The translations under genes were made by a program, and so were the position numbers. Source: Thalia democratica (taxonomy: Eukaryota). Taken from it: 64,000 nt of DNA. Of the stretch, positions 8,301 to 59,600 are shown piece after piece (position 1 is the first letter of the stretch; every line of letters starts with the position of its first letter). The DNA lies in the NCBI GenBank assembly GCA_965202585.1, contig OZ241832.1:45384001-45448000 (forward strand), given 5' to 3'. A model generated the notes under the pieces. The model saw only the letters and a list, made by a program, of their open reading frames with translations. It was not told where the DNA came from and did no database searches.

Positions 8301-11068
8301 GCATAAAAAATGTTAGTTTTTGTAAAAAAACTACACAACTTATTAAATTTTATTTATACCTTTAAGGTACTTCGATTATTATATCGTTATTTTATTTTAT
8401 TATATCGAAAGCAATTAACAAAGATTTCCACTTCTAGAGGACAGTTAAAATAGTTTACTCTTTCAATACTTTAACTAGTAACTAAGTTTTGGTCTAAGAC
8501 CTCGTCAGCACTTGTACTTATAAGTACTAAGGAGGTCTTTGACCGAAACTAAAAGTTTACTAAAAGTCTTGAAAGAATGTAGTATATTTAGATTGTTTTG
8601 ATAATATTTTTGTTAATGCTAGGTTCCATACCTGCAGCTAATTATATTCAGTTACCTAAGTTGTCTGGTCATTCTCTTGGACTCACAGGCAGATACTTTT
8701 ATATTGCGTTTAGAGTTAGTTATTAAAGTTACTACGAAATGTTGTTATATTAAGCTTTAATGTTCTCTTTAAAACTTATCTATATTAATACTTTGAAAAA
8801 TAACAAATCTATACAAGTTTAAGCATATTTTCTAATGTTTGCTTAAAATAGCTTTGAAAATAAAATCTAAGTTTTACTTAATTGACTATTAAATTCAATT
8901 GTCTTTTTTTGTGAAAAGCTGTTTATTTTAACATCTTTAAGTTTGTCTAATATTTTTTGTTCTACAAACTTTACTAACAACTTATTTTTTGTAGCCTGTA
9001 CCTGAAAAACATTTTGTTGTACATATTGATACTGTAGATAGTGATCAGTGTGTTGTAAGAATTTCATTTTCAAACATCTATAAGGAGTTTAGATCAACTA
9101 GCACTTGGCTTAAGTTTCCCTTCGTGTGTGTGCCTGGAAAAGGTTCCAAATTAGTATTTATTAAATAAGTTTTAGTATTATATCAGAAATAAAACTTAAT
9201 TTATAATTTATTTAAAAAAATGTAAACTATTTTGCATAAAATATACTGGAAACATTAACACCTAATTTTAAAGTTTTTTAAATGAATTCTACAAGTTTAG
9301 TTTTAACTTAAACAAAAAGTAAATATTTAGTACTCGGTTTTATAAAGTTTAATGTAACTTTAATAATTAGATATTTTACTGTAATTTATTGTCTTATTTT
9401 TAGTATAATTAAGAAAACTAAGTGTTTGATTTTTTATGAAAATTGATATAAGTTTTAATTAAAATAGTTTGATAACTTTTAAAACTATTTTTTTTATGTA
9501 AATTAAGTTATATATAAACTGTTGTTTTTTAGTTACAAGTCTAACTCAATCTGTATTCATATTTAATTATAGGTAGTATAGAAGAAATAGTCTCAAGAGG
9601 AGAAAAAAGAAACATTTTAGGACCTGCTCCAATATCCCAGCGCTGGACGCTTCTCGTCATGGACCTCAAATATATTTACTCTACCTATTCTAATAAGTAA
9701 GTTAGGAATATAATCAACCCAAATTAAATCTTATGTCAAAAATTCTTCATATGTAGTTATAAAATTTAAAAAAATGATTTAAGCAAAACTTAAGTAGTTA
9801 AGAAAGATTAAATAAAAGTATGAAAAATTTTCTGTTTAAGTTTTTAGTAATCACATATGTTTTATATTTTTAGAAAGTTTTCACATCTTAAAAGTATGCG
9901 ATTTTGCGCTAATATGTGCATTAAAAATTGCTTTACTTCGGATATAAACTTTGACCCTCGTCTTACTATCAAGCAAGCTCGTAAGCTAGGATTTGTTCGT
10001 AATGATGAAAACTATGCTCCTACACCCAACGATATGAGATTTTTTCTGCCTAAAAATAAGGTTTTTTTGACTTATCTGCCAGTATTTTTACGCTTGTTTT
10101 AAAGAATTATTTTTAATAATTTACAAAAACATAGTTTAAGTTTATAATTAAATAAACTAATTAATTTAATAAAATAAACTTGTCAGTTTAATTAAAGTTT
10201 TTAATGAATTTGATTTTAAGAATTATTTAAGTATCTCAAATTTAATTTTCTAAAATGAACTGAAACATTAAAACTTATTTTAATTATTTTAGTTATTTGC
10301 ATAAAGTTTAGATTAATACTATTATTAAAAAACATCGGCGAAAGTCAGCAGAGCAGAAGCCTGGACTTTCGTTTGCCGTGAGACAAGCTCAAGTTTAACT
10401 AAAGGGTTGATCACGCCAATTCGATCATCAGACCACAAGTTTCGGTAGACTGAGACCGGTTTCGTCCGTATTAGGACTCATCAGTCAGTCACAACCGAAA
10501 AACTTGCAATCTTTAATCTACAAACGGTTTATGATGCTTTCACATTAAGCAACCATTTGCTGAAAAAATATAAATTGTCAGCAAATGGTTGCTTCATGTG
10601 AAAGCATTATAATTGGCGTGATCAACCCTTTTGTTACTATTAATAAAACTTACAAAAAAATGTTTTAAATTTAAATTAGTTTGTAATTTACAGTTTCTTA
10701 ATTAAACTTAGAATAAACAGATTTTAAACATTAAAAACTATTCAAGTAGTAACATTATAACTAAAATATTTCACTGTAATATTTTAAGTTACAATTTTTG
10801 TAATTTATTAACAACCAATAAGTTAAATAACTATAAATTAAACTACTCATGTTTATTTAACAATCATGAGTTTAGAAATTAAATAATAATACAGAAATGG
10901 GACGATTTTTATGACATCATAAGATTTCCAGTTGATGCTCATAAAATCAAACTTCCTTTCGATGCAATACAAAAAAGTGACAACTGTCTGTTGCTTGTTG
11001 ACGAAAATAAAAGAATTGCTGAAACTAGACAAATACCAGGATATATAACTTCAATAGAACGAGTCGAT
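5357..11068 (+). CDS. WDR90: WDR90 exons 1-7: N-terminal CFAP20/DUF667-like domain
   Basis: MQSKPNGSKPIWQHPFVNIFKQYKIETWNKVKKEGNVQKLLDKQIKCTTYKIQGSIPAANYIQLPKLSGHSLGLTGRYFYIAFRPVPEKHFVVHID...HLKSMRFCANMCIKNCFTSD; GT-AG introns. Confidence 0.92.
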
Positions 11069-14000
11069 GTAATTAGTGTGACTGTGTAGTTTTTATTAGT
11101 AAACTTTTTTATTTCTACATTTGTAAAAGATATTTTTTATTTTCAAATGTATAACATCTTTAATTTTTATTTAGAAATATACTAGAATGTTAGTTAGATA
11201 TTTTATACGGATTTACCTTAGGTACATGAACACCCTTTTGTAAAACAAAACCAAAAGTTGAAAGAAACTTTAGTTAAAAATTATCAGTAATAAAAGTTGA
11301 ATTATTTAAATTTTCACATAAATCGTTCAAAATTAAAATAAGACAACACTTAGTTCGAACACAAAGTTAAACATACCTGCTACCAGAAGTTAGTTTTTCC
11401 ACAAAAATTTTAACTTGAAAGCACAATAAAATAGTTTTTAAAAGAAGGTAAGAAGATGAGAATATGAGAAGCCATTATATTTATTTATACTCATTATATG
11501 TATTGTAGGGCCCTTATAAAAAATACGACTTTTGAGTTTTCAGCTAGAAATAATTTTTGTGTTTAAGAAATATCATAATAACACCTTGTGAAAAACTTTA
11601 GCTGATTTGGAAAAACCTTGATAGAGTCTATTTTTGATTTTCTGAAATAACCCGAATGCGTTCCAAAAAATCGACGTTAGAGTTTTTAGTTAAAAGTTGT
11701 TTTACAGGTAGAAATTGTCACTAAAACACTGCATTTTTTAAGATAGTTTGAAAAAAATTTTACGGATTAGTAGTAGAAAGTTAGGTGTTGTTCAAGTTGA
11801 ACTTTCATATTTTAAAATAAAGCGGTTTTTAATATTAAGTTTTAATTTCTTTTAGTGTCTAGGTTCAAAAATTGCTTATCAAAAATATTTTTTTTACAAA
11901 GAACTTGATCAAAAGTTGGTTCACAATAAAACCAATTTTTATCCATTTTTACCAATTTTAGTATATGGAAAGAATAGTTGATTTAAAAACTAGTTGATTT
12001 AATAACTTTTCACTTAAAAGGTTAGCAATGTTGTGTTATAACCACAGCACTTATCATTTAAAAATAGCAAAAGCTAAGATTTTTTAATTAATTTTATCTG
12101 TTTTTTTTAAGAGAAGAAAATTTGCTCTACAAAATGATTTAAATTTGTGGAAATTTTTCTTTCAAAAAAAGTTATCAAAGTAACTTTTATAAGGTTGTTA
12201 TAAGGTGTAATCTTAAGCAACAAACAAGACCATATTTTTAGCCTGATTGTATTAAAAAATGGTTTACTTCGTCTAAGGCTGTAATGTTTTAAGGATACTT
12301 TTAATTAAAAATTACTTATGTATCTTAAGATTTTAAATGATATAAAGGCAGAAGGACTAGAATTTTCGATATTGTCGTTTATAAATAAGAATTCAAGATT
12401 TGTAGAAAAAAAAATTAAACAAATAATCGAAGACTCTTACTTCTCAGCAAAACCTAGAGTAATATTCACTTCTAGGCCACTATTATGACCTTATAGCTAA
12501 GATCCGATATGCGAACATGAGAAATGTATGATGATTTACTAATTTAAGTACTTTTATAAAAAATTTTTATCGGAACGACAAGGAACTAACTTATTAAAAG
12601 AGTAAAGTACATATACCAAAAAATATATATAACTATGTAACAAATTTGCCCTTTAGTTTTAAAATGTATTTTAGTTTTTGGCAATTTTCGTTTTGTGTTC
12701 ACGGTTAATGTTTTTATTGTTTATAAGTTGTTGTTGATGTAAGCAGTTTTGGCACAAATTTTGTACATATTGTTGTTTCTAATTGCTTTTATTAGTGCAT
12801 TAAAAAGGTTAAAATGTTTATAACTCTGTAGCTCTTGTAGTTAAATCTATAAAAAAAGTAACTTAGCTCTATAGATAAAAGTAATCCCTTAAGGCAGGCC
12901 ATAGGTTTACAACTACTGTAAAACAGATAAAATTAAAACAAACCTACCAGAATCTTCAGTGTCAAAATACAGTCATTTATTTTAATACGCATAGTTAACA
13001 ACCGTGTATATACAAACATACAGTTTGAATAGATTAAAATAATTAAAGTTTATAATAAAACTTTTCATTTGAATAGATTGGAATCTGTTTGTATTTTATT
13101 AATAAAATCTAACCTCTGTAAACATAAACATTTTGATTTCATTGCTTCTTTAATTTGTAATTTATAATTATGATTATATAAGTATTTGAAAACCTGATCT
13201 TTTGTTACTATTTTAAGAAATTGATTATATACCACGAAATATATTTTGTTTAAGTGAAGGTTAAGTTGTACTTTAGTTATATGGTGTTAACATTTTTAAA
13301 AGTCTAAGTGTTCAAAAATTTTTCTATTTAACTTATTCAACATAGAGTAGCAAGCTTTTAAAATTTTTCTAGTAATTTTTCTGACCGAATTGATGTGTCT
13401 AAAATTCATTGACCGTAAGATCTTTTATAAAGTTTTAAGGCTGATATAAAATTTGTTCATCAGAGACATATAATTAAGATTTACGATAGGATTGGTTAGA
13501 AGTTGCATATTTTGGCTTGTGTTTGGAATTTTTTTTACTTTATTGTATAATAACTTACTTTTTATTTATTTTTGAATAGTAATATTATTCTATATTTTTA
13601 TTTATCTATACATTTTGTTTTTTATTTTTATTTAAACTGTCAAAACTAAAAGCAAGCTTTTACTAATTTATACAACTTTTAAAACGTTAAAAATACTTGA
13701 ACCGTAATTTTAAAACAATAGTTTTTGGAAACTTTTAAAATCTCTATAGAGCAAACACGTTGATTCTAAGAAAAAAGTAGAAAACTGGGGTGATGTTGAG
13801 GTTGCAATTTCTAAATGTACGAGTAAAGATATTCAACCTGATCCTGGATACATTACTTTGTTACCTGCTGTTGGTCTAGATAATGCTAATCTTTGTGATG
13901 ATAAGTTAGTTGTATGGTATTCTCTTTTTTAAGCTATTAAAACTAAAAAGTTTAGCTTGTGTTTTAATATAATTAAAATTAAGAACATTTTAGAAACCTG

Positions 14001-17000
14001 ATTATGTTTAGTTTGTTGAATTAAAATAAATATTGTAGACATTTTATTTGTTTAAGTATAATCTTTTTAAGAGAACAATTTTGATAATTAAAAAATCTAG
14101 ATTTTGCTTTATCTGATAAATGTTAAAAATCCATTTTGACGTACTGAATAATTTTCTTTATAAAACTTTAAATTATATTTGTAAATTAAAACTAAAATCT
14201 TAACATAAAGATATGATAATTAAAAAGTTATAAGTTTCAAGTTTGTAAAGGATTATTGAAAACTAATATAACGAAAAAACAAATAAGTTTTCTATCTATT
14301 TAGCTAGGTATATTAGCCTGCACTTTTTATAGTTTAATTAAATAAAGCACAAAATAAGCCAAAAAATAGTCATTTAGCGTGTCTCACAATTCAAGTAAAA
14401 TTTTCACCAGAAGTAAATTGCATGCAAAAAAGCCAACAGTCTCTCTCTATATTTATATTATTTTATAATATACTTACTTATTTATAGTTTTTTTAAACTT
14501 TCGGTCAATAGGGCTCGACAATTAAAATTGTAGCTAAGTATATAATTATACAATAAACGATAGTTTTTAACAGCTGTTTCATACATGATACATTTCTAGA
14601 TCACATAATACTCAGAAAAGTTTTAGTTTATTAATTATAATATTACTACGTCACAATATTTATAAAAATTTTAAATTTTAAATTTCTATAGAATATATCT
14701 AAAAAAATTAAGATTTTCTGGGGATTATATAAGATAGAAATATCTCATATATGAAATAGCTGTAAATAACTGTTGTTTATTATAATTTATTATATGCACA
14801 TACTATGTAAATTTAAATTGTTAAATCGTTTAGTTTGATTCTGTAATTTTTTGAAAAATTTTGGGCTTGATTTTAATTAATAGTCTTTTTTAAGCTACAA
14901 AGAGAATGCTAATTCTGAAAAAGAAAAAGATAAGACGGACATAATTGTTAACATCCATGAAAACGAAGCAGAGTGTGCGGTAAATGACTCTAAAGTTGCA
15001 AAGTCGGCTGAAATCGATCAATGTATGGGAGTTTTTTACATAACTTATAAGATATTTTAATAAGTTTTTATATATGTTTATTTTAGTACTGAAAAAAGTT
15101 CCCAGCGAAAATAAAATACCGTCAGTAGCTGCGTTTAATTTACCTAAGGAAAAAGTTCTACTTGCCAAACGAGCTATTGGATTTGGATATCGCAGTAAAT
15201 CATTTAGGTTTTAAAGTTTTTTACTTTCAAATAAAAGTTTATTATAAATAAAGCTGTTTGTATTTTTCATAAAAGTTATATTAGTAATTTTAAATTTGTT
15301 TAGAAGATTTTGTTGTAAATAAACTTTAAAAGTATAGAGTTGGATTTCAAGTTTTTATTGTAAAATTGTACTAACTTTAAATTCTAATCTAAGAGTTTTC
15401 AAAGTTATTCATTTTAACAATTAGATTTCAAGTTTTTATTGTCATAATACTATTAGTTTTAAATACTAATCTAAAAGTTTTATAAGTTATCGAATATCAA
15501 GTATTATATACAAATTGTTTTCTAAACTTTTTTATAAAACAACTGAAGGATATTTGATTGTAACTTTAAGAGGTATATCAGTTTGGGATCCTTCAAATCA
15601 TGGTAATGTTGTAGTGTATGCAGTTCAAGCGCTAATAATTAAAATGGATACATTTACTAAGAATCAACATATATTTGTTGGCCACACAAGTCCAGTTACA
15701 TCACTTGCGTTTAACAAGCAACAAAGTGAACGTGAGATTACTTACTTTGATTTGCCTTAAGTTTAATAGTTTACATGTTACTTCTTTTTAATTTAGCTAG
15801 GTTTCTTATTAAATAAATTTTAGTAAAGTTTTCCCATTTTTAACTTTAATTACGTTTGTTTATAAACATAAATTTACCATGCATAAAGTATAAGTAAACT
15901 CCTTAATAAATTAGATGACTTGAGTCGTTTGTTGTCATTGTGACTTTTTAAAAGAAGCAAACTTTTTTAGAAAGTGATAAGGAAGTACTATAAATAATGT
16001 TTTGTGTATTTAATACTTAGCAGAATCACTTAATTAAAAACCTATATATGTTTTTTTGCACCTAAAACTTATTTGTAGTTACTTGAAAGTATATTCAAAC
16101 ATGAAATTATTACTTTTGCTGCTTCATATATGTTTTTCAACGATTTTAAAATATTTTCAATGGTATTTTTGTAGAAGACCTAGAAGAGCATCCGACAATT
16201 TTAGCGAGCTCTCAAGGAGGTTTCTGTGGTTTAGTAAAAATTTGGAACTATATGAAGCACGAATGCATAGTTACGATAGAAAACGACCAATGCGCATCCA
16301 TCGACTGCTTGTCGTTTTCACGAACCGGTGCTGTCCTCGCTGCATCTGGAAAGTGAGTTTGATTTCTGAAACTTTATAACATTTTGTATGTAATCGAACT
16401 AATACAGATAGTTGAGAAATTAAGTACATATATTCACGCCTTATGTTTTTCAGTTATATTAGTTTTAAGTACCTAACTAATACAGAAATCTTTTTTAAAT
16501 TCTATAGCGTTTTCGTCCATCAAATCTTATGTTATAATCCTCTGCTGTTACAGTTTCGTCTGATAACACATTGTGTTGGTCAGGTACTGCATCAAGCTCG
16601 GGATTACTTTTATGACTATGCCTACTAGTCAGGGTTGCCACAAGGTCAGGAAAAGTTAGGAAAAGGTTAAAATAATGACAAAAAAAAGTCAGATTTTGTT
16701 AGTTCAAATTTACAAAATTCCTTATTTTCCAAAGCTTTCAACTAGTAAAAAAAAATTGTTAAAAATCCTTTAGCAATTTCCTTTAGCAATAGACTTTAGC
16801 AAAATCCTTTAGCAAATCCTTTAGCAATAGACTAATTTGCAAATTTTCCTAGAAATTTGCAAAATTATTAAATTTGCAATGCCTTCATCTGGCATAAATT
16901 AATAAATTATCCTTTATAAAACTGCCAGTATTTATTTTGGCCATCATCAACAAAGTTCAGATGTTTTATGCCATCGATAATAAACAATGAACTTCACCGC

Positions 17001-20000
17001 ACGACCAACAACAACGGCATCCGAGACAACATACGACCGGTTTCGTCCTTTTTAGGGCTCATCAGGCTGGCTTAGTCGCAAGAAACCGCTGTTGTGATCT
17101 TAACCAAGCGGGCTTAAGTGCAAATGCAACAACAGCGGTTTCTCGCGACTAAGCCTGCCTGATGAGACCTAAAAAGGACGAAACCGGTCGTAGGTTGTCT
17201 CGGATGCCGTTGTTGTTGGTCGCGCGGTGAAGTTCGTTGTTTATTATACACTTTATAAAACTGCAAAGTTTTTTTTTTAACTTGCAAAATTGGAAGTAAA
17301 AATAAATGAGTATAAAAAGAAATGAAGCCCATAAATTGTGGCTAGATTTAGAGAAAAATTCTCTTCGACAAGTGTAGGGGCAGCAGATGAAAAAGATTTA
17401 AATAAAATTAGGCAAATGGTATTAAATGCCAAGAAAATAAAGCGGAATGCAGACCAGATGAAGGAAACCATATCTTCATTAGATGAAGAGGTAGTGCTAA
17501 TAAAGAAACGGAGAAAATAAAATTTAGTACATATAAAAAAAAGTGTTTGATTAAGTTTTTTATTGTTTTAAGGTTTTAATTGTAAATAGTTCGTTATTGT
17601 GTTAAGGTTTTAGTTGTGAAAGTTTGTTATTAATTTAAGGTTTTAATTGTAAAAGTTCCTTATATGTCGTATCGTTTATTTAGATACATGTATGTTAGGA
17701 AATGCTAAAAAACTGTTTTTTTTCAGACAAGCTGTGTTTATCAGATAATAATACAAGTATTTTGCTGATAAAGCTGTTTGTTGCAAAAACATCAATCATA
17801 CACGGATGGTTCAATGTTTGATGTGATGGAAGTTTGATGATTGAATTCAGCAAAAAAAACTGTTTTTTTAACCTGTATTAAAATTAGATTGAAAGCTTTA
17901 CATAGTTTCAAATGTTAGATTATGTATTTTAGAATAAGTTTAAATGAGAGTAATATTTAGAAAAGTCAGGAAAATTTTAGTAAAAAGTCAGGAATTTTTT
18001 CTCAGCCAGATCTGTGGCAACCCTGACTAGTACCTGACGTCTTCTCGGCCGGTTTGGCACGCGTAGCGTGTTTAGAAAATAGCTTTGTAAGGCTATTGGC
18101 CGAGAGCGTCTTGGGTTTTTTACTGGTAAATAAAAGTTAAATATCTTATTAGTGACTAAACTAGACAGTAGTTATTTAAGTTTAACTAGAGGTCTTAAGA
18201 TACTTTTTTTGAATCGTTAAAACAACTTTTGATTTGAGCTATCGTACTTATTTTAACTTAGTCGATGATGATTCTAATATATACTTGATATGAAATCTTA
18301 GTATAGACTAGAAAGTAAATCTTTAATTTAACCTAAGTGATTACAACGTATACCTTACTATATAAATTTAATACAGAACAAAATACGATACACTAATTTT
18401 ATCAATATTAGAACTTACTTAACTACGTTCTACTGTTAATACTCAAAGTATAGGCTCAGCACTCTGAGTTTATTTTACAATGTTACTAAAAAGCGATAAA
18501 AAATAACGCTCACGCACATGCAAGTCAGAGCTCGATGGTTTGTTTGCAGGGCAACTTTTATTAAATTAATTAGCGTTTGTTTACAGTCCTCAGCAATGCT
18601 TACTGAAGTCAGAGCCAAGCTAGGACTTGAAGCGTATGAAACGTCTAAAAGTCCGCCTTGGTTGAACTACAACAGACGTTTCTGCTTGAGAATTGGTTGT
18701 TAAAAAACAACGAAAGCTGGAAAAGTATACAAACTAATATACACTTGCTTTAGTTTTTCGGCGATTCATACAGTAAAATAACTCATTGTAGAAGTGTAAA
18801 GCTCGAAAAAACAGTTGTAGCGATCAACGAAAGCTGAAAATTGTATTGAGTTACATTTGCTTTCGTTTATCACCGGTGTTTCTTTAAGTAAGTGGACTAC
18901 AATATAAGTGAAATGCTGAGTAACATTCGCTAAAAAACAACGAAATCTGAACGCATATAATCGCTAAAATACAATCTAAGTGACGTTCACAACTATACCG
19001 AAACACGTTCTGGTAACTGTTTTCGAGATTTTGTTACTAAGTCAAACAGTAAACGGTTCTAACAAAAAATAGTGAAATCTTGTTCACAAAGAATCTAAAA
19101 AGTGCCTGCTTAAACAAAAGAGTGTTTGCTTTAATTACAACTAATTGTAACTATTCTTGTCAACAATGACAGCTAGCCGAAACGAAAAGTGAATGAACAC
19201 TTCTCTCGTGGCGCTTGGCTTTAAACAGCTACGTTACAATCAAAAAAACTCTTCTTTTTTAAGTCTCCCGGAGAGCAAGCCGATTGTACTTACAATGTTT
19301 CTAATTTTTTGATTAAAAATGTTATATCGTATCTTTATTTGTTCAATGTGTAATTTAGCTTAATCAGATAATTTTCATAGTTTTTAATAGGTCAGATAAG
19401 CGTTAGTCGCAGTCAATTTAAATTTTCATGGAATTTTTTTAAGAGTTTTAGATTGGCAGTGAATTTTCAAATGTTTTTATTAGTATTTTAATTTTTTCTA
19501 TAATACATCTCCAAACTGTTTTTTTTTACTGTTTTTACAATTCATGTTAAAAAAGTAGATTCAAACTTATGATTTTGAACTAGATTTTGTGTTATAAGTT
19601 GCTATAAGTTGCAGTCAGTTTTTTTTAAACAGACACTATTTTTATTAATTACAAGAGTACAATTAGTAAAACATATGCTATATTTCTAATAGAATAGCAT
19701 ACGGTCTTGTTTTTGGAAAGAAGGCAGTTAAAAATGTACAAATAAAAAATGTAAAATAAAAACTAAACTATAAAGTATGCATATGTTCTATCTACAACAC
19801 TTCTTGTAATACTAAATAAGGTACACTTTAAAGTAAGTGTAAAAGTTTTTGTTAGTCTAACTTTTAATGCCTAGAAGAAAAAAATACCTTGAATTTCAAC
19901 ACTTGTAAATATATTTAAATAATTCAATTTGTTTGTTTAAAATTGAAATACAGACTGTTATATTAATTTAATTTTTCTGATACTACAAAATAGTTTAAAA

Positions 20001-23000: not shown

Positions 23001-23226
23001 TTTAGTTTTTTAAGTTCTATTTAAAATGTAGCATCTCATAATGTTTGAAGTAAACTGTATATATGATTAATGACTTAATTGTAACCTTTTATATAAGGTT
23101 TGAACTATAATAAATGATGATAACTATTCTTTAACATCTGATTATTTTGCTACTTGCTAAAATAAGGTTACATAAACAATACAAGTTATATTTGTATACA
23201 GTTAATTAAACATCATCTACCTAATT

Positions 23227-23273
<47 letters not shown>

Positions 23274-47200: not shown

Positions 47201-50200
47201 TTTCTGAGAGGTTTTCTAAGAAAATTTCAGAGAAAATAAGCCAAGTTTTCAGCTCTGTTCATTTAAGAACAGTTTTGTATACTGATCGACCTCTAAATGG
47301 AATTTACAAAGATGTTTCTCCCACCCATGAAAAAAGTAACATCATCTATAAATTTAGTTGCCACTGTGGTAGTGACTACGTGGGAAAAACATCTCAAAAG
47401 TTTCATGTAAGAATCGATCAACATGTTCCGAAAGTCTTGAAAAAGTGGTTTGATGGCCGTTCTGAGAAACCAACTAAAAAATACTTCTCGGCGATTGGGC
47501 AACATTTGTTGGACAATCCTGAGCGTGTTAAAAATTATAAAAAGGGCCATTTTTCAGTCTTAGTGAGAGCAGAGAACTCTTTTCAATTGCATATTCTGGA
47601 AGCCTTATGTATTCAATCTTTAAGGCCCAGTTTATGTAAGCAGAAAAAGTTCGTTTACCAAACTAGACTTTTTAAATCCTTATATTAGTAATTTTAAAGT
47701 AATTAGTTTCTTGTTAAACTTTATTTTTAAGCAGAGTTTTAATTTAAAATTTTTATCGCTTCTTTATTTAGATAGTTTTAATTCTACCGAGTTTTATTAG
47801 TATACCAAATTTGTTTAGCATTAGCACTTATTTAATTTTTAACATTTGATTATTCCGTCATTTTATATCTTAAAACTTTAAACTGCAGTTTAACTTTATT
47901 CCAATTTTAATTTTTCATTCCAATCCAGTAGGAAACAATTTCTGACGAGTCCTACTTGAAAGTACTTAAATACATTTAAAGAAAATAAAATGAAATGCAT
48001 TGTGTTATATATTTTTAGTAAGTTATGCACCGGAAAAAAGCTATTACGTAAGTAAAATAGTAAAATTATTTTTGTAGTTTGAGCTATTATGATTTATCTA
48101 TTTCCATGATTTATTTTTTCAACTTTTACCATCATAACTTTTTTATTTTAATCATAATTGTGTTTTCATTCCAATCCAGTAGGAAACAATTTCTATTTTT
48201 TCAACTTTTACCATCATAATTTTTTTATTTTAATCATAATTGTGTTTTCATTCCAATCCAGTAGGAAACAATTTCTGACGAGTCCTACTTGAAAGTACTT
48301 AAATAAATTTAAAGAACATAAAATGAAATGCATTGTGTTATATATTTTTAGTAAGTTATGCACCGGAAAAAAGCTATTACGTAAGTAAAATAGTAAAATT
48401 ATTTTAAAAACTTTGTTTTAATTTAAGTTTATAGACCATTGTGTATTGTGTATTCAATGTTACACGTTTCAAACAGTACATACAAAAATATCAAAGTAAG
48501 ATGGCGAATACAATCGACGGTAACAATTTGTGCTTGTTTGCGGCAAATAATAGAAGAGTAAGTGTGTGGTCTTGTGATTGGTCGAATCATCTTTTCCCGC
48601 TAGTTGATTGGCTCACTTTTCCTGCGCATAAACATACTGTTCATGGCAAAATGCACAAAAAACGAAAAAAAGTAAAATATTGAGTAGAGTATTATTTTCA
48701 TCTTTTGTTGTTAGTTTATGTTACAGTATATAGTTGTATTACAGAGTCTTTAGGGTGCACGACAATTCAAATTCCAATATTTTAAGTTTTGAGTTTGTAG
48801 TTTGAGCTATTATGATTTATCTATTTCCATGATTTATTTTTTCAACTTTTACCATCATAACTTTTTTATTAGATTATCATATAAATTTTTAACATTTTTA
48901 TTTCAGTTAGTTTTCTAAAGTACGGCCCTTAAATTATTTTTTATAAGAATCTGAATTGTCATTTGAACAACTATTTTATCTTAAGTGAAAATATTTTAGG
49001 AACTAGTTTTTTGATTTTAAATTATCTAAGAATATTTTTTAATTTGAATTCGTAAAATTCTTAGTGTTGAATTCAACTTGTAATTAAAATTTTGTAATAT
49101 CAAATTAATTCATAATTATTATATTATAATTAAAGGTTTTTATTTATTTTTTAAATACGTTTTATCAAATTAAAGTTTTTTTCAAATCAATTATACAATG
49201 CTAAATGCCATAATGTTGTTAATTGCTTTTTTAAGTACAAGTATGTAAAAATTTTTCAATTGTGTAAATCTTAATTTCTACTTTTCTTAACTTTAAAGAA
49301 TCAGCATTATTTGGAAAATCCACCAAGTTTATGTTTTTTCCATCCCACCGATTCAGACTTGTTAGTTTATACGGGATACGGACTCGACAAATCTGTTCAA
49401 CAATACAGCTTATCAAAAAAACAAGTATGTTTTTTTAACACCGTAATAAAACTGTTTTAGTATTAATATTGTATATAAAAAAATATGAACTTAGTTTTAA
49501 CTCTATTTTAATAATGCTGCATGTTAATTTTACCTAATTAGTTTTGCTCTGAACAAAAATTTGCACTCAACTTTAAATTAAATTTCTTAGTTTATTGACT
49601 GTATTAATCAGAATAATTAATTGTTAGGGGTGTAAATGTAATTTTATAAAATAGTTGTTTAAGTAATAAAAAACAAGAAAGTTTAGTAATAAAAGTTAAA
49701 GTGATAAATTCATGGATTAAGAAAAGATCAAGATAAGTGTAAAAAATTTAAAATTTAACGGCCGACATGTTACTGATTCGCTTCTAAAACCCCTGTTCTT
49801 TAACACAAACAGTTTTGTGTTTTTTAAATAGTAAGCAGTATACGTTTACAAACACACTTCTGCTAATATTTTCTGTGTTTTTTCTGCTAAACCCATCACG
49901 TTTTTGAGTTAAGTTTTGTATATTTACTTTGCTCGAATACTCTCTTTTTAGATTAAAATTTGTTGTATTAACTTTAGATTGTAAAGAAAACTTCAATATC
50001 ACGCTGGCCATCTTGTATGAGGCTGCTAGACGAAGTGAACATCGCCGTAGTGGGAACTAACTCCAGGCTCGTTCAGCTTTTAGATCTTAAGCACGCTACA
50101 TTTCAAGATTATTTGCTTCATTCATCATCCGTTCAGCATTTGTGTGTTTACAAAAACAAGCTTGTTTCAACCTCTAAATTTGGAAGTATTTATGTGTGGG

Positions 50201-52187: not shown

Positions 52188-52411
52188 AGTATACTCACAA
52201 CTTCCATCTGCGCAGTTCCCCAAATCGATTCCTACCCGATCAAACCCCACCCAAAAACATTTTTATTTATGTTTCGTTTTCACTGTAACTGTGTTACCCC
52301 TTATACCCTTGGTCGATAACTTTTTTCTTATTTATGTATACTTCTTTATTTTTATATATTTGGCTGACAATTGTGCGGGTTGGATTGTGCTGGGTTGGAA
52401 TTGAGCGTGTC
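52188..52411. mobile_element. MITE of the CCACCC-array family
   Basis: Degenerate left end GTATACTCACAACTTCC, right end GGAATTGAGCGTGTCCC, core CTGTTACCCC motif. Confidence 0.5.
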
Positions 52412-53069
52412 CCACAACATTCAAAAAATAAATTGTTATTTTTCTAGTTTGTCTACTAAGCCATGGCATTTCCGAAATCTATTTTTAATACTTTTCATAC
52501 AACTTGTTATTTTTAATTTTATTAACAAAACTATGTTTCACTCGTTTTAAATAAATCAAATAAGATCCTTAAGTAAAAAATCTGTAAACTTTTTATATAT
52601 AAGTATGCAAGAAGACATAAGGATAAACTTGAAATAAAACTGGCGTTTATGTGCAAAAAACAACAAAATAAAATTTAATTCTAAAATTTTTTTCTAAATT
52701 ATCAATTTAGAAAAATCATAATATTGACAGGCAAGTTCACGCTAAGGTTAGCAAAATATAAGCTACTTAATAATATTATAAAGTAAAAAACTTTAAACAG
52801 AAACATACTTACAAATAGCAGGCTTGTAAAATTTTTGAAAAAAAAATCTTTTAGCTAAAACACTAAAGTGAATTATTGCTTTTACTGTTTATAAAAAGTT
52901 AACTATCGTACTGTGACATAATTAAGAGCTTTACTTAAAAAATCTAATAGTGTTATAAATTTTAAATTGGTTACTTTTATTGTTTTTAATATTTACGTGT
53001 ACAGTTTGAAATTATATTGTGTTAATCAAATCTTAATAAGTTAAAAAACCTTTTTAAAATGAAAACTTT

Positions 53070-53290
53070 AGCTCGTTCCTTTTTTTAATGGAGCTCCCCG
53101 TCAGCCTTCGCTATTTCCATCTTCTTATAGGTACAGATCATTCAGATTTTCTGCGGATTCCTTATTTCTCCGATGCCCTGTAAAATGTTCTTGTTAATAT
53201 TGTATTCAGTGTTATTGATTTTTAGTTTCCAAGTGTATTTCGACAGTTCGGTGCCTTTTTTCCTGTGGACTTTCAAATCTCTAATATGAC
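53070..53290 (-). pseudogene. Decayed PLE endonuclease C-terminal fragment from a different PLE lineage
   Basis: Minus strand HRKKGTELSKYTWKLKINNTEYNINKNIL..KI*MICTYKKMEI..LH*KKE matches the TELSKYIWxLK..CxLCxxEK..LNxRxE signature of some C-terminal-EN PLEs. Truncated by the element starting at 53292. Confidence 0.7.
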
Positions 53291-53291
53291 C

Positions 53292-53520
53292 GGGACACGT
53301 TCAAAATCCACCCGAGTCAAAATCCACCCGATCAAAATCAACCCGGTTCAAAATCCACCCGATCAAAATCAACCCGACTCTAAATCCACCCGATCAAAAT
53401 CCACCCGATCAAAATCAACCCGACTCTAAATCCACCCGATCAAAATCCATCCGAGTCAAAATCCACCCGATCAAATCCACCCGGTTCAAAATCCACCCGA
53501 TCAAAATCAACCCGAGTTCA
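53292..53520 (+). repeat. Left terminus plus subterminal ~14-15-nt tandem array (AAATCCACCCGATC) of a putative MULE-type element
   Basis: GGGACACGTTCAAAATCC start; reverse-complement relative ..GAGCGTGTCCC at 52400-52411; same unit as 705-1167 in the opposite orientation. The link to the 55956 transposase is inferred; no right end found. Confidence 0.65.
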
Positions 53521-55955
53521 TTTTTTTTCGAAATAAGAATTAATTTCTAATAGAATTTTGTAATGTTGAATAAAGTTATATGTTTAAACAACTATTGGTA
53601 TAAAAAAGAGTAAGTATTTATAAAGAAAGAAATTTTGATTTACTTATTAAAATAATTAAAAAAGTAAGTTAAACAATATAATTAAACAGAAATAAAAAAA
53701 ATATTCATAGTAGCTTTACAAGTATTTAAAATGTTTATAATTTATTAATGTTAGTAGTGTTGGTGTTACTTTTAAAAAAAGAAGTTAAAAAAAAATAAAA
53801 AAAGAATTACGCTCAGTTTTAATCCATTTAAACTTCCTTCTAATTTAATTTCCCAAAGTCAATCATAATTAAATAAAAATATTTACTAAGGATAACTAAT
53901 AGTAAATTAAAGTATCAAAACTATAGAAGTTTATAAATTAGAAGAATCTTTAATAACATTTATTAAACTAAAGAAAATTACAAAAATCAAATACCAAATA
54001 ATGTAAATTTATAAAAATGTTAATAAAATGTTACAAAAAGAAAATTAAAATATTAATCTAAAATTTTTGAGCTTTTTTTTTTTGATGTAAAAAGTTTTGT
54101 GTTTTGTGCTTTACTTAAATTTCAAAATAGTATTACATTCAATATTTTATTATATAAAAAATTTAAACTAACAGTGTTTATAAAAAATAAAATATAGATA
54201 AAGAATTATATAAAATTGCTACGTGATAATAAAATAAAAATTCTTTGTTAAATTTGGAAAAACTATCACCTATTAATTATATTTTAAACATTATTGTTTT
54301 CGACGTGGAAAAGACGTTAAAAGATATTTTTAGTGTGCGACTCGATAACTTTAAGGTATGTTCGTGCAAGAGGACTTAGGACCAAATATTTTGAGCGCTT
54401 TTATTTGTCGTTTAGTAAAAATTTATTGACGTTTCTTTTATTAGTAATTTTTAAAAAAAGAACATAAATTTTAATATAAAAATACGAAAACTAATTTACT
54501 AAAAATATAAATGAGGAATATGTAAGAAATCAATAACTGTTTTAAAACAATTTTATTGTTTTCTATCTAATTTTTGTTACAAATATTTTTTAGTTATTTT
54601 TTTTTAATTTATACAATAATTTTAGCTGCTATTATCTTTTTTTCAAAGTGTTTAAGTTATTTGAATTTAATTTTATTAAAGGTTTTTTTTATAAACCATC
54701 TATTTTTGAAAAAACTAAAAATTGTTTCGTCTAAAGTAACTAAAGTTATAAGTTATTTTTAATTAGATAACAACTTAATTTGCTAGTTTTTAAGTAATAG
54801 TACAAATTAAAAAGCTAAACATTTTTCTATGAATTCTAAAGTCCTTTAAAAAAACAAATATCGACTCTACAATTCATTGAGTTTGCTCAAATAGCTTGTA
54901 AATTGCAACTAAAAAAGTTAGTAGTTAGACTTGAGCTAGGGAAATTATATACTTTAGAATTGTAGTAGTAAACAAATAAGTTTAGTTTTTTAGAAATGAC
55001 ACTATATTTATAACAAATGTTACGAAAAAAAAACTTATAACATTTTTAATTTATTATTAAAATGTTCTATTTTTACATATGTTCATTAAAAAAAGTATGT
55101 ATTTCAGACAAGAGAGTTTAAATTCAAGTATAAGTTATTTTTATGAATTTTTGTACCAGACTGTATCAACTTAAACAATCGTATTATTAATTTTATTAAT
55201 AGGTTAAGGCTAGTTTTGAAACTGATTAATTGAGTGGTTTTATAAAATTTAATCTCTTTTGGTTAACGTTTAAATTTTAAATTTAAAATTTTCTAATCTA
55301 AAACTTTTAATTTACATGCCATAAATTTTCTTGAATTAATTTCTGACAATTTAAGTTAAAAGCTATAACTGCATGTTTTTAATTAATTAGTTGTAAACGT
55401 TTTATGTTTTTTTATAAATATAAAGTTGCATAGAAATTGTAATTAAGTAAGATAAATTATTATTTACTGTTCAATATTATATTGTTAATTGATATTTTTT
55501 AATTCATAGAAATGGAAATGTTATTATTTACCACTATTTTTTTTAAATATAATCTTCATATAAAAAAAGTCCATTTGTTAAAACTTAAGAAATTTTAAGT
55601 AATTTAATTAAAAATGAAACAATATTAAAATTAAACAAAATTTTATATTGGTTATAACGAATTTAAACGGTAAAGACAACTATTGTTATAACAAATTGTT
55701 TAGTAGACAAATTAACTTTAAAAGCGTGAAAATTTTGTCTAACAAATAAAACCGAAAATTAATAAATATTTAATTTAAAGTTAATATTGAAAAATCTTTA
55801 AATGGCAATACAGTAAAGGTAACTATCTAAAGTAAATTAGTGACCTTTTCTTAACAAAGATTTCTAATAGTTACAAGTTTTAGTTTGTGAACACTACAAC
55901 TGTAATACTTACTGAGGTAATAAATTTTAGATCACTTTACTAACAAAATCAAAGT

Positions 55956-58389
55956 ATGTCAGTTACATTTACAAAAAACCAGAAAAACAAAACGGTCGCT
56001 TGCTTTGAAGGGCATTCTTTTTTTAAAGCCAAGGCATCTAAAAGAGACCCCACCTTAATATTTTATACATGTGAAATGTATTATAACAAGGACATCAAAT
56101 GTCTAGGCAGGGTAATTTTAAAACTTTAACTAGTTCATTATTCTAGTCTGCAAATCTTAAATTTATTTGTTTATTATAATAGGACTTTTTCAATAAAATT
56201 TTATAAAATGCTTTTTATTATTACTTGTTGTCTTATGTTGAAACAACTCATATATATTCTATTATTCAGAAGATTATCTAATAATATTTTTGTAAACTAC
56301 TATAAAATAATTGTTTTAAGTTATTTATATTTATGTATATGTAAAATATACAAAATTATTGTAAAAAAATGCAGTTTTTTTGCTGTTTCTTCATTAGAGT
56401 TACATCTTTAACAGTTATTCACAGCACTTTTGTCTAAAGACTTATAAAAAAGCTACATATACATATAATATATAGGCACAGAACTTTAGCTTTTTGTAAA
56501 GACTAAATAAACTGTGTTGCAAATTTAATACTAGGATAGTTTTTTTTATTTCTTTATATAATCATTTGTTTAAAATATATTTTAACCAGGGTTGCCACAA
56601 GTTCAGGAAATGTCAGGAAAAACTCAGGGAATTTTCAATTTGAAAAAAATCTCAGAGAATCTCATGGAAACTCAAGGAATTTCGATTTATTTTTTAAACT
56701 CAGGGAAGTTTTGATTTTTTCTAAAAAACTCAGGGAAGTTTTAAGATTAAAAAAAACTCAGTAAATTTTTTGCTTGATTTTTAAATGAGATTTAATTAAT
56801 CTGGTTCAATATTTTGTTCAAGAAAATTAATTTTAATTACTTTTAAGTTCTTATTTAGAAATTTTTAAATTTTGTGGCTACTTTTTAAGGATAAAAAAAA
56901 ACTCAGGGAAGTTTAAGGTTACTCAGGGAAGTTTCTGGTCACTCAGGGAAGACTTTTTGACTCAAAGAGTGGCAACCCTGCAGACAAAATGTAATAATTA
57001 AAAAAAAAATTCCTGAATTTTTTCAAAAACCCCAATTTTTATCTGACTTTTGTCATTAAGTTAGGTAAAAATTGGGGTTTTATAAACAATTTAGAAAATT
57101 TTTGAAAAATTGAGTGGTAACCCTGTGTTTACCATCAATAATAATAATTAAGTAGTTTTGTAGTAATGTTTTTATTGTTAGTACATAGGGTTTGTCTTAG
57201 ATATTAAAGATAATTGTTATAGTTCATCATCTTATAAGTTACTACTAATAAATTTTCAGTTACACATCAGAGGAAATCAGGTCATAAAAGAGGTAGGGTC
57301 TCACTCTCATCTACCAAATCCATCAAAAATAAAGGTATATCTATTTGTAAATAACAGTTTAAAAAAAATCTATTTAAAAAATTTTATTAACTGGGGCTGC
57401 TGAAATAAACAACTTTATTTAACAGGTACGTAAAGCTGTTGAAGAGTTGAAAAAATTGAGCAAAACTGGCATTGTTAGCACAGAAAACTCTGTCAGTAGA
57501 TCCTTGAAGGTAGCTGGTGAAAGTTGTGGAATGCAATTACCAAACAGAGATTCGTTAAAACAAAGAAGTAGGAAAGCGAGACAAAAAGCTGGAAATGTTG
57601 TTCCCGAACCAACTAACTTGCGGGACTTAATATTGCCAGAATATCTAACTACATTAGACGACAGTACTAACTTCCTTCTCCATGATTTTTTAAATGAAGT
57701 AGCTGGCTCAAGGATAATCATTTTTTCAACTCATAAAAACCTTGAGTTGCTTGCTAGGTGCAAAAAAATCATGTCAGATGGTACATTTAGTACAGCACCA
57801 ACAAGGCATTTCAATCAGCTATATACCATTCATGGAGAAGTCATGGAGACAAGTTTAGACGAAAAACCTGCTGTATTCCCTTTAGTGTACGCTCTGCTTC
57901 AAAACACAGGACACATACACTAGACTTCTCACTACATTAAACAATGTAAACAAAGATGTTTCTTTAGCCTCAGATCTTTTGCTTCAACATAGGGGTTGTC
58001 CAAATGAAGCAAAACCTATTGTTAAGTATTTCGTTCACACTTACATCGGTGCCGAAGGTCGAGAACCACTTTTTCCGATAAACTTTTGGAGTGTTTACGA
58101 AAGAACAAGGTCAAATTGCTTCCGGACAAACAACTGTGTTGAGGGTTGGCACAGACGATTTAAGTCCGACATGCAGTGTGCCAACCCTGGCGTGTTTAAG
58201 TGTGTGCAGACAATTGTCAAGGAACAAAAAACTCAAAGCTTGGAAATTATGAGGTTAAACGCAGGTGAACCTCCAAAAAAGAAACAAAAACAGTACAGAG
58301 ATCTTGACCAGAGGTTGAAAAGAATTGTAAATAGTCGTTCTGAAAAAACTATATTAGAATACCTTAGAGGTATTGCCCATAACCTTTAA
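55956..58389 (+). pseudogene. Spliced FLYWCH-domain MULE (Mutator-like) transposase, frameshifted and internally deleted
   Basis: Exons 55956-56111, 57260-57334 and 57426-58389 are in phase. FLYWCH: F..FEGHSF..YTC..C..HSH. MULE motifs: RIIIFST..L..L, MSDGTFSTAP..FNQLYTIHG, PLVYALL, YFVHTYIG, RTNNCVEGWHRRF. Frameshift near 57905; the DFE..CxFH block is missing. Confidence 0.85.
56587..56980. mobile_element. MITE with CAGGGTTGCC TIRs and ACTCAGGGAA subterminal repeats, in transposase intron 1
   Basis: TIR pair seen directly; a further GGTAACCCTG end lies at ~57115-57125. Confidence 0.75.
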
Positions 58390-59417
58390 TAACTAGCGTT
58401 TGTATTATTATTCGTTTTTTTTCATAAATTTGTTTAAATAAGTTCATTTTAATGTCATAAAGATTTAAATTCATTGTTGTGTGCTGTTTAGTTCTTTTAA
58501 AAATTTTGAAAAATAGTTTATACCAATAACATTTTAGAGTATTTATATAGTATCTTTTATGTTAACTTTTTGTTCGAGATATTTAAGCAGGCAACTTTAA
58601 TTTGCTTTACACCTGTACCAATTTAGTCTTTTTTTTTTTCATTAAGTTGCTTAATTTGGTTTATTTATATGTCATAAAGATTTAAATTTAGTGTTATGTA
58701 TAATTAAGTTCTTTTGAAGATTTAGAAAAAACATTTTTGCCACTAACATTTTAAAGATTTATATAGTATTCATTATGTTTTTTTTTTCTAGGCATTTAAG
58801 CAGACAACTTCAGTTTGCTAATACCTGTACCAGTTTTGTTTTCGTTCGTTATTAAATTCTTTAATATGTTATGTTGCATAACAACTAATATAGTATATTA
58901 CACCTATTAGATTTAAATCTAAACTTAGTAACTATATTTATAATATCATTATTAATATTGATAAATTAATATCAAGTAGTGTAAAACTTTGGTAAATTAT
59001 TACAACTTTATTAAAAGCTTAGAAGCATTGTCTAACTAACATGACCATAGCTTTTAAAGATTAAAACAGCTTAAAAAATTATTAAATTTTTATATATGTA
59101 AAACGTTAAGATCTTGAAGTTTTCAGTAATAGATTAATACGACATGACACAAAAGAGTGTGTATTTGTATGTTCTAAAAATTTTACAAAACTTTTTTTTT
59201 GTACTATAGTTTCTAAAAATGGTATAAAAAGACATTTAAAAACTTCATGTCTAATTAATAACAACTTTACTGTTTTTCAAAATCAAACTTTAAGTTTTAA
59301 ATAAGCTTAGCTTATTTTATTCCAAATATAGTTCACAAAGAAACTAATTAAAGTATAAGTGCCTAGGTTTTGATGCCTGGGTCCTTCGTATGACAATAAA
59401 CTTACAATAATAATTAA

Positions 59418-59600
59418 CATAAAGTGATGATCATACCAATTAGATCATCAGACCACAAGCACTTGGTAGACTGAGACCCGATCTGAGTCTAACAAGTGTT
59501 TGTGGTTTGATGATTGAATAGGTATAATCAAACCTTTATGTAAAACAGAGCTTGCCTCACGGCACAAGATTTTCTGAACTATTTCTACCGGCTTTCGCCA
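59418..59600. mobile_element. Collapsed fold-back derivative of family A with both HHR cores deleted
   Basis: Inverted repeat 59418-59540 centred on AGACTGA-GACCCGATC-TGAGTCT; family tail CTTGCCTCACGGC..GCTTTCGCCA follows. Confidence 0.75.

Follow-up and report, generated by a model that had tools for sequence, protein, structure and literature searches.

Penelope-like elements (PLEs) leave insertions made up of a pseudo-LTR, an inverted 5'-truncated copy and a one-sided tail (Craig et al. 2021, PMC8557442; Frangieh et al. 2024, PMC11167929). In the more recent of these studies, both strands were cleaved and extended, and the tail was defined by two internal start sites of the reverse transcriptase (RT) (Frangieh et al. 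2024, PMC11167929). Minimal hammerhead ribozymes lying close together (~100–700 bp) on opposite strands have been described as 'dual min-HHRs' (Cervera and de la Pena 2014, PMC4209133). Non-LTR retrozymes, defined by the same authors, have units of about 170–400 bp, a GC ceiling of 45–50% and self-cleaved transcripts in linear and circular form (Cervera and de la Pena 2020, PMC7229834), and retrozymes are derived from PLE pseudo-LTRs according to Li et al. (2026, 10.64898/2026.07.22.740005). The link between retrozymes and PLEs has so far been argued mainly through co-occurrence and sequence similarity.

Here, we describe five tail-out fold-backs in the window, i.e. the whole 64,000-nucleotide stretch of the Thalia democratica genome that was analysed. 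The inverted repeats that a first-pass annotation had reported at five loci (8477, 10327, 16977, 32358 and 59418) are all present. They are very probably non-coding retroelements of the non-LTR-retrozyme type—units of ~330 nt with a type I hammerhead and a palindromic helix III—that were integrated by the RT and GIY-YIG endonuclease of resident PLEs.

Layout of the fold-backs

The fold-backs belong to three repeat families (A, B and C), and their arms end at one of two 3' termini, T1 (tailed) or T2 (tailless):

8428–8588, family A fold-back, old copy (8477 locus): left arm (-) 8428–8516, right arm (+) 8519–8588
10327–10636, family B fold-back B1: long arm (-) 10327–10561, ending at T1; short arm (+) 10574–10636, ending at T2
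16924–17128, minus strand, family C fold-back (16977 locus), left arm: unit positions 293 to 167, with a 53-nt tail (T1)
17129–17247, plus strand, family C fold-back (16977 locus), right arm: unit positions 327 to 114 (T2)
32358–32841, family B fold-back B2: left arm (-) ending at T2 (32358), right arm (+) ending at T1 (32841)
59420–59611, family B fold-back B3, without ribozyme core (59418 locus): left arm (-) unit positions 72 to 134 (T2), right arm (+) from unit position ~70–77 to T1

These spans replace earlier boundaries that had missed the one-sided tails, and what had been taken for spacers at 16977 and 32358 is unit sequence of the longer arm, not foreign DNA. At all five loci, an inverted 5'-truncated copy adjoins the other copy, with the 3' ends facing outward. 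The family A fold-back has 70-nt arms that are 71% complementary and exactly one tail, on the left arm (...CCTCTAGAAGTGG), the right arm being tailless. The arms of the C fold-back (16924–17247) are 95% identical. B2 is old and diverged (71–79% identity to the unit), with arms of nearly one unit each that meet near 32587; its genome matches are limited to the element (best 76–83%), and its flanks are unique. The short arm of B1 lost its ribozyme through an internal deletion, whose joint (10611/10612) has no second copy that we could find in the genome. The ribozyme, reported earlier as deleted at 59418, was not lost from the middle: both arms of B3 are 5'-truncated at about unit position 72/77, beside the cleavage site (75/76).

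A single target-site duplication encloses the whole fold-back at B1, C and B3. That of B1 measures 14 bp with one mismatch (TACTATTATTAAAA, 10317–10330; TACTATTAATAAAA, 10637–10650), that of C is a perfect 14 bp (CTTTATAAAACTGC, 16912–16925 and 17251–17264, the last two bases overlapping the element end), and that of B3 is 9 bp long (TAATTAACA, 59411–59419 and 59612–59620). No clear duplication was found at A, B2 or the coding PLE described below.

In every family, the two alternative 3' termini lie downstream of the ribozyme and 25–80 nt apart, at unit positions 127–141 and 204–208 in B and at 113–115 and 165–173 in C. In B, 17/17 fold-backs have one terminus of each kind, as do about 6/9 in C, 7/8 in A and every copy in the window. 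Among DNA contigs, both termini adjoin many different flanks, and the strand-switch joints are likewise many and varied. These regularities bear on a DNA-level origin without reverse transcription, whether by palindrome formation when DNA was replicated or repaired or through DNA-transposon MITEs bearing terminal inverted repeats. Short palindromes near some junctions (TTGCTAGCAA in B, TGCATTTGCA in C) would suit such an origin, which is nevertheless extremely improbable: the outer ends fall at two fixed unit positions, one of each per fold-back, and solo and tandem copies use the same two; the arms cross unit boundaries, as from tandem or circular templates; and the target-site duplications vary in length from 9 to 14 bp.

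State of the ribozymes

The core motif CTGATGA..GAAAC occurs four times in the window, against 0.06 matches expected by chance, and none of 100 shuffles reached four. The ribozymes and their remnants are as follows:

10459–10484 (-), 17040–17065 (-), 17159–17184 (+) and 32421–32446 (-), canonical hammerhead cores from the motif count
10432–10502, minus strand, type I hammerhead in the long arm of B1: Rfam HH9, 35.1 bits, E = 4e-5
17141–17211, plus strand, hammerhead in the right arm of the C fold-back: Rfam 26.7 bits, E = 0.021; motif match
16980–17081, minus strand, hammerhead in the left arm of the C fold-back: Rfam 23.4 bits, E = 0.23; motif match
32410–32452, minus strand, hammerhead in the left arm of B2: Rfam Hammerhead_1, 22.1 bits, E = 0.96; motif match
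32694–32715, plus strand, half hammerhead in the right arm of B2, read against the B unit
8486–8508 (-) and 8527–8549 (+), mutated hammerhead cores of the family A fold-back

The Rfam HH9 and type I models match the hammerhead places below their gathering score, as expected of a helix III that is only a 2-bp palindrome (GAAACCGGTC), a feature that the first-pass annotation had rightly pointed out. Each unit of B and C contains a type I hammerhead, CTGATGAG-helix II-CGAAACCGGTC. Like the paired minimal PLE hammerheads, those of the window have a palindromic helix III (ACCGGT), implying dimeric action, and form opposite-strand pairs; unlike the minimal variant, in which helix II is enlarged, they have helices I and II of canonical size, helix I being long and HH9-like in B (Cervera and de la Pena 2014, PMC4209133).

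Among the ten window arms, only the long arm of B1 holds a fully intact ribozyme (10432–10502, minus strand), in keeping with the earlier report of a ribozyme on one arm at this locus. The predicted cut follows GGTC and falls between minus-strand positions 10454 and 10453, and the minimum-energy fold is hammerhead-shaped (z = -2.65). Cores on both arms had also been claimed for 8477, 16977 and 32358, which holds for 16977 alone, where each arm has a mismatch in helix II. The right arm there (17141–17211) has an intact core, an A.A mismatch in helix II and a predicted cleavage between 17189 and 17190; the left arm (16980–17081), also with an intact core, has a C.A mismatch in helix II, two mismatches in helix I, a predicted cleavage between 17035 and 17034 and a minimum-energy fold that is not hammerhead-shaped. 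At 32358, one ribozyme is damaged and the other is a half: the left arm has lost the closing pair of helix II (C11.1>A), and the right arm keeps CTGATGAG (CTGATGAGTCCTAACCAGGACG) and helix II, a 27-nt local duplication standing in place of GAAAC, helix III and the cleavage site. Mutations have altered both cores at 8477 (CTAAGGAG in one arm, ..GACCAAAAC in the other); even at E <= 10, Rfam gave no hammerhead match at this locus. Many other family A copies have an intact CTGACGAGGTCTTTGACCGAAAC, and the canonical core is kept in 19 of 42 sampled A copies.

Two marine metatranscriptome runs contain contigs of family B and none of the flanks. One RNA contig continues across T1 into the following part of the unit, and three stop at 10455, 1 nt away from the predicted cut, but contigs cannot show ends, strand or circularity. 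A transcript of the full fold-back is predicted to form a near-perfect hairpin of ~120 bp (-227 kcal/mol), a fold that would bury the ribozymes. In a tail-out fold-back, moreover, the sense ribozyme always lies in the downstream arm and is transcribed after its complement. Both features speak against the suggested processing in the manner of ambisense viroid-like RNAs. We rejected a viroid-like RNA of both polarities: in normal B and C units, just one strand encodes a ribozyme, opposite ribozymes arise only through inverted duplication of DNA, and at none of the window loci are two ribozymes fully intact.

Repeat families and resident Penelope-like elements

Family B has a 336-nt unit (window loci 10327, 32358 and 59418), family C has a 331-nt unit (16977), and family A, represented at 8477, is older. 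The families are not three unrelated ones, as had been thought: B and C have 33/35 hammerhead bases and colinear conserved blocks in common and are homologous, and A is distinct. A first look at the genome gave 2530 candidates for B, 2359 for C and at least 100 for A, the last at 79–85% identity. Copies are solo, tandem (up to seven identical units) or tail-out inverted. One B array has 7.0 copies at a 336-bp period with 100% matches and is flanked by an inverted 1.7-unit arm; 1.5-unit copies are seen in C. Variable 5' truncation goes together with partial tandem copies, and in the fold-backs it affects both arms. Fold-backs were present at 17/27 sampled B loci, 8/26 C loci and 8/27 A loci.

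In several respects, these repeats resemble metazoan non-LTR retrozymes: a type I hammerhead lies in short non-coding units (336/331 nt) that form head-to-tail tandems from dimers upward, unit GC is low (43%), target-site duplications exceed 4 bp (14, 14 and 9 bp), copies number in the thousands and sequences are found in RNA libraries (Cervera and de la Pena 2020, PMC7229834). They differ in that many copies are solo or inverted—the word 'inverted' occurs 0 times in that paper—and in that helix III is a 2-bp palindrome of the dimer type.

The A, B and C units were also considered as autonomous PLEs, in which a single ORF encodes RT and GIY-YIG endonuclease, a candidate rejected on the absence of an ORF from the units and of an adjoining RT ORF at 88 sampled loci. 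The window does contain a coding PLE:

44379–48405, coding PLE, tail-out inverted pair: inverted 5'-truncated copy (-) 44379–45742, longer copy (+) 45743–48405

The plus-strand copy holds an RT/EN ORF (46222–47688; RVT_1 match, E = 2.3e-12), and its nearest Atlas clusters carry HTH_animal, RVT_1 and GIY-YIG. The arms, 1254 nt long, are 99% complementary; 307/310 aa are identical, and the right end extends about 47 nt beyond the left end. Across the genome, there are 568 GIY-YIG candidates, the longest ORFs reaching 918 aa; GIY-YIG matches also form at least nine minus/plus pairs, spaced 0.8–3.4 kb apart.

Another reading takes the five fold-backs for inverted insertions of full-length coding PLEs, so severely 5'-truncated that nothing but the 3' pseudo-LTR ends is left, with no separate non-autonomous family. 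Their architecture does match that of the coding PLE of the window, PLE pseudo-LTRs contain hammerheads (Cervera and de la Pena 2014, PMC4209133) and a resemblance between retrozymes and pseudo-LTRs has been described in Xenopus (Li et al. 2026, 10.64898/2026.07.22.740005). We consider this reading unlikely: the 336-nt and 331-nt units close on themselves head to tail with no coding sequence between repeats, an RT ORF stands beside the unit in 0/88 sampled loci and none of the best B, C and A matches lies within 5 kb of any listed GIY-YIG match. Against integration by resident PLEs, the window PLE has only 13 nt (CTGAYGAGTCCTA) in common with B and C, not above shuffles, and no autonomous PLE with an A, B or C tail was identified in a 3'-region comparison that covered the window PLE only. 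When the first-pass annotation offered extreme 5'-truncated and inverted PLE insertions as one explanation, it was essentially right about the mode of insertion; what was inserted are ~330-nt non-coding repeats of the retrozyme type, not the ends of coding PLEs.

Junctions and mode of integration

Its other explanation was a self-propagating class of ribozyme-bearing hairpin retro-MITEs, in which the hairpin would be transcribed, processed by its two ribozymes and re-inserted whole. Inner junctions largely refute it. Their positions are scattered across the unit in 17 B and 8 C fold-backs, and no close copy with the same junction was found for four of the five window loci; single window arms match ordinary family members at 95–100%, whereas the best junction-spanning matches reach 74–86%. 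Some recurrence exists, with similar junction positions to the 16977 copy at 5–6 loci (74–86%) and to the 10327 copy at about six (75–85%), which we put down to hot spots where the unit contains short palindromes. The sole multi-copy junction, at 59418, is 98–100% identical at 16 or more dispersed loci. Copies of this locus are 92–99% identical over the full 651-nt query and across as much as 5.9 kb of its surroundings, with homology running for kilobases on both sides; the junction is multi-copy because the fold-back is nested in a larger high-copy transposon that later amplified, multiplying it passively, and this fold-back has no ribozyme core at all. A hairpin transcript would, moreover, fold as a ~120-bp duplex. 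Taken together, propagation as hairpins is very unlikely. An inverted truncated copy beside the main copy is routine for PLE machinery, so the fold-backs are not a new self-propagating hairpin element.

We therefore return to retrozyme-type units integrated by PLE machinery. The window elements resemble PLE insertions in their 5' truncation, partial tandems, inverted copy with outward 3' end, tail at one end only, two start sites 3' of the hammerhead and AT-rich targets; they differ in having no ORF and in tails of 25–80 nt, not the published 30–40 bp (Craig et al. 2021, PMC8557442; Frangieh et al. 2024, PMC11167929). The tails of B and C, at about 55–80 nt, are longer than quoted for PLEs and count as a point against PLE-mediated integration.

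By analogy with published PLE biochemistry, the PLE endonuclease would cut both target strands, each 3'-OH would prime a cDNA at a start site inside the element RNA, and the two cDNAs, separately 5'-truncated, would be joined head to head. After insertion, the copies decay. With two primed cDNAs joined in this way, a fold-back would be the by-product of one integration event and not a functional unit. In L1 twin priming, too, both target strands prime cDNA, giving an insertion with an inverted 5' part inside one target-site duplication. Its segments are copied from neighbouring but distinct stretches of the RNA, whereas both arms here contain the same 3' region and would hence both have been primed near the 3' end.

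The near-strict rule of one tailed T1 arm and one tailless T2 arm extends over three families and, apparently, the coding PLE. Tentatively, it may reflect obligatory coordinated priming of the two strands, either through a dimeric PLE complex that uses each start site once or through an endonuclease that resolves a hairpin intermediate at T2. To our knowledge, obligatory coordination of this kind has not been described for PLE integration so far. In vitro, top-strand and bottom-strand start sites of PLEs showed no difference. If coordinated priming is true, young and abundant retrozyme fold-backs would be a natural record from which the second half of the PLE integration process could be worked out.

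A large repeat fraction of an AT-rich marine animal genome can thus be assigned to a defined class, with thousands of copies in at least three families. The analysis reveals neither a new kind of mobile element nor a viroid-like dual-polarity RNA. Insertion scars, namely the inverted copy, a tail on one side, two start sites and the target-site duplication, give evidence that PLE machinery mobilises animal retrozymes. Rfam also returned weak miRNA-like matches on the fold-back hairpins; an annotation should mask such hairpins as retrozyme/PLE-type insertions and not call them miRNA precursors.

Repeat families and hammerhead cores

The fold-back features at the five loci are real and of an already known kind: the elements concerned, which fall into the non-coding, hammerhead-bearing families A (locus 8477), B (10327, 32358 and 59418, here B1, B2 and B3) and C (16977), are very probably non-autonomous retrozyme-type elements (PMC7229834; Li et al. 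2026 preprint) that were integrated by the machinery of Penelope-like elements (PLEs). Every one of the five loci belongs to a genomic repeat family. Similarity searches run on the source genome itself (802 Mb) gave first-look candidate counts of 2530 for family B (top copies 95–97% identity), 2359 for family C (90–96%) and about 100 for family A (79–85%). The B unit measures 336 nt (7.0 head-to-tail copies, with 100% matches, stand at one locus) and the C unit 331 nt; their GC content is 43% versus 26% for the window, and no ORF was found in the units.

The first-pass annotation described three unrelated families, a description that fails for B and C, which agree at 33 of 35 hammerhead positions and retain colinear blocks of conserved sequence, among them TAAAACGAGCGT and GACAATGTTTTA-ACGTTG. 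Both of these blocks are kept outside the hammerhead (unit B, L031:2271-2606; unit C, L038:1521-1851) and, going by the sequence, might be a protein-binding site or promoter element. Family A elsewhere in the genome includes many copies with an intact CTGACGAG-GTCTTTGAC-CGAAAC-TTAGTT core and a quasi-palindromic helix III.

Inverted repeats are present, as annotated, at all five loci. The pattern CTGATGA-N(6-30)-GAAAC has four matches in the window versus 0.06 expected, and none of 100 shuffles gave four.

Canonical hammerhead cores matching CTGATGA-N(6-30)-GAAAC
10459-10484, minus strand
17040-17065, minus strand
17159-17184, plus strand
32421-32446, minus strand

Rfam at gathering score returned no match in the whole window, and under an E-value threshold its HH9 and type I models scored 22–35 bits at the four core sites; such sub-gathering scores are expected because helix III consists only of the palindrome ACCGGT (GAAAC-CGGTC). 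Around locus 8477 (8400-8650), Rfam gave no hammerhead at E<=10.

State of the hammerhead by arm
10327 left arm, 10432-10502, minus strand: fully intact; predicted fold hammerhead-shaped
10327 right arm: ribozyme gone through internal deletion
16977 both arms: intact cores; one helix II mismatch per arm, and two helix I mismatches in the left arm; predicted cut of the right arm at 17189|17190, plus strand
32358 left arm: helix II closing pair lost
32358 right arm: ribozyme reduced to its 5' half
8477 both arms: mutations at essential core positions

The hammerhead state across the arms is weaker than had been claimed. Cores on both arms, reported for 8477, 16977 and 32358, are intact at 16977, both mutated at 8477 and both damaged at 32358. 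At 59418, where the ribozyme was described as deleted, the catalytic core is indeed absent, each arm beginning next to the cleavage site at about unit position 72/77.

Anatomy of the insertions

For 27 loci of family B, 26 of C and 27 of A, copies were mapped against a genuine unit, with B and C positions numbered along it. Starts of copies vary along the unit (5' truncation), some copies span several units, and in all three families the 3' end downstream of the ribozyme takes one of two positions, a distal one (T1, the arm with a tail) and a proximal one (T2, no tail).

Cleavage sites and 3' termini, in unit positions or by end sequence
Family B: cleavage after 75; T2 at 127-141; T1 at 204-208
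Family C: cleavage after 56; T2 at 113-115; T1 at 165-173
Family A: T2 at ...AATAAACTATAT; T1 about 25 nt beyond, at ...CCTCTAGAAGTTG

An adjoining inverted copy was found at 17/27 B, 8/26 C and 8/27 A loci, with the 3' ends facing outward (tail-out) every time. The two arms of a fold-back stopped at different termini, one at T1 and one at T2, in 17/17 fold-backs of B, about 6/9 of C and 7/8 of A, and in all of the window copies. The DNA contigs of two runs agree with this, containing many differing AT-rich flanks at T1 and T2 and many differing strand-switch joints. With the units as ruler, the element boundaries first annotated prove too short, the tail-bearing arm of each extending further, and the 33-nt 'spacer' at 16977 turns out to belong to the longer arm, as its unit positions 293-326.

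Window copies re-measured
A, 8428-8588: left end T1, right end T2
B1, 10327-10636: left end T1, right end T2
C, 16924-17247: left end T1, right end T2
B2, 32358-32841: left end T2, right end T1
B3, 59420-59611: left end T2, right end T1

Target-site duplications enclose the whole fold-back at C (CTTTATAAAACTGC, 14 bp), B1 (TACTATTA(T/A)TAAAA, 14 bp with one mismatch) and B3 (TAATTAACA, 9 bp), and each fold-back therefore represents one integration event; the same search at the old copies A and B2 and at the coding PLE of the window gave none that was convincing. The two arms of a fold-back are only slightly more alike than copies from different loci in B, and no more alike in C, and arm-to-arm identity was rejected as proof of co-origin.

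Inner junctions vary between loci, examples from B being 192/314, 72/175, 109/38, 5/18, 221/221 and 110/98 (arm/arm unit positions). The 5' ends of B arms gather at unit positions 192-198, a short way before the T1 start site and away from the ribozyme cut, with junction hot spots at 194-198 in B as well as close to short palindromes of the units. An excess of arm 5' ends at the hammerhead cut itself was considered and found unconvincing (4/45 arms at unit positions 72-86 versus about 2 expected).

Propagation and transcripts of the fold-backs

The proposal that the fold-backs form a self-propagating hairpin class was examined by searching the genome with junction-spanning pieces of each. For C, B1, A and B2, full-length junction matches reached at best 74–86%, the separate halves matched ordinary copies at 95–100%, and the B1 deletion joint has no second copy in the genome. 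The B3 junction recurs with 98–100% identity at at least 16 loci, where identity runs through the entire 651-nt query and for up to 5.9 kb. Since this identity extends kilobases beyond B3, which is without a ribozyme core, the self-propagating hairpin is unsupported. The window from 54000 to 64000 is part of a large transposon (>10,000 first-look candidates, 97–98% identity), and B3 is, judged from these alignments, an insertion into one lineage of that transposon that was then multiplied passively. The segment 55861-59654 is missing from most copies of the transposon, 55860 being joined straight to 59655, and a further nested insert, 59913-62343, is common to only two other loci.

Processing from the transcripts of both strands, in an ambisense manner, had also been suggested. 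In a tail-out pair the antisense arm precedes the sense ribozyme in transcripts of either strand, so the ribozyme is made with its complement present; the C element (324 nt) is predicted to fold, at -226.9 kcal/mol (z = -29.6), into an almost perfect hairpin, and isolated ribozymes have predicted folding energies of -11 to -23 kcal/mol. Dual-polarity processing is thus unlikely, and a dsRNA or siRNA fate of the transcripts would, on these folding models, be more plausible. Sequences of family B, but none from the locus flanks, are present in two marine metatranscriptome runs. One RNA contig crosses T1 into the following part of the B unit, and three contigs from these runs stop at 10455, a single nucleotide short of the cut predicted on the minus strand (10454|10453). 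Contig ends being distinct from evidence of molecule ends, strand or circles, this is no more than suggestive of self-cleavage.

Weak Rfam matches to miRNA precursors at the fold-back centres 10528-10613 and 8475-8563 (e.g. MIR5649, 43 bits versus a gathering score of 100) were dismissed as hairpin artefacts; such matches could mislead automatic annotation.

PLE machinery and the proposed mode of insertion

The window contains a coding PLE (44379-48405) with the same inverted shape as the A, B and C fold-backs: a tail-out pair with arms of 1254 nt, 99% complementary, in which both copies are 5'-truncated and one end reaches about 47 nt beyond the other. In the longer copy a 134-aa frame precedes a 488-aa RT/EN ORF (EN putative), the ORFs of the two arms are identical at 307/310 aa, and an RVT_1 domain was found. 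Its endonuclease assignment is based on visual recognition of a IYKFSCHCGSDYVGKT motif and on its Atlas neighbours (HTH_animal, RVT_1, GIY-YIG); Pfam GIY-YIG gave no match at E<=10 on the C-terminal 150 aa. Genome-wide, a GIY-YIG search returned 568 candidates (frames up to 918 aa), among them at least nine minus/plus pairs 0.8–3.4 kb apart. The 3' end of the window PLE (47912-48405) comprises 1.5 copies of a 333-bp unit (161-nt copies, 99% identical) and an additional 82-nt duplication at 48112-48275. Rfam found no hammerhead at E<=10 in this tail (47880-48420), and CTGACGAGTCCTA, considered as half a hammerhead, was set aside as resemblance only, as no consistent hammerhead could be drawn. 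The B and C units match the tail over 13 nt only, not above shuffles.

In work with a purified PLE protein, both strands of the target were cleaved and extended, reverse transcription began at two adjacent internal RNA sites, the stretch between them forming the tail, and ribozyme cleavage was dispensable for insertion (Frangieh et al. 2024, PMC11167929). Hammerhead pairs on opposite strands, 100–700 bp apart, have been described, and a palindromic helix III implies dimeric hammerhead action (Cervera & de la Pena 2014, PMC4209133). The insertion marks of the A, B and C fold-backs match published PLE biology (Craig et al.; PMC11167929; PMC4209133). From the observed anatomy, copy numbers, target-site duplications and presence of PLEs, we infer the responsible enzyme and the order of steps: both target strands would prime cDNA on element RNA, with T1 and T2 as the start sites, and the two truncated cDNAs would be joined head to head.

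The defining features of non-LTR retrozymes tested on genome sequence, and the tested features of PLE-type insertion, were found in the A, B and C elements, whereas the defining ORF of an autonomous PLE is missing. The cited retrozyme papers make no mention of inverted copies or tails, so the connection with PLEs that these insertion scars provide adds modestly to the record; the rule of one tail per fold-back is a possible lead on the integration mechanism.

Single-unit B insertions (L007, L009, L018 and L030) measure 343–346 nt, a full unit with terminal redundancy of about 10 nt. In the seven-copy array, at L031:1780-4119 (G000:C5:12360279-12362618), the B units are mutually 100% identical and stand beside an inverted arm of 1.7 units. 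Such an arrangement would fit a single insertion copied from a multimeric or circular template, of the kind proposed in the retrozyme literature for unit arrays, rather than slow array growth.
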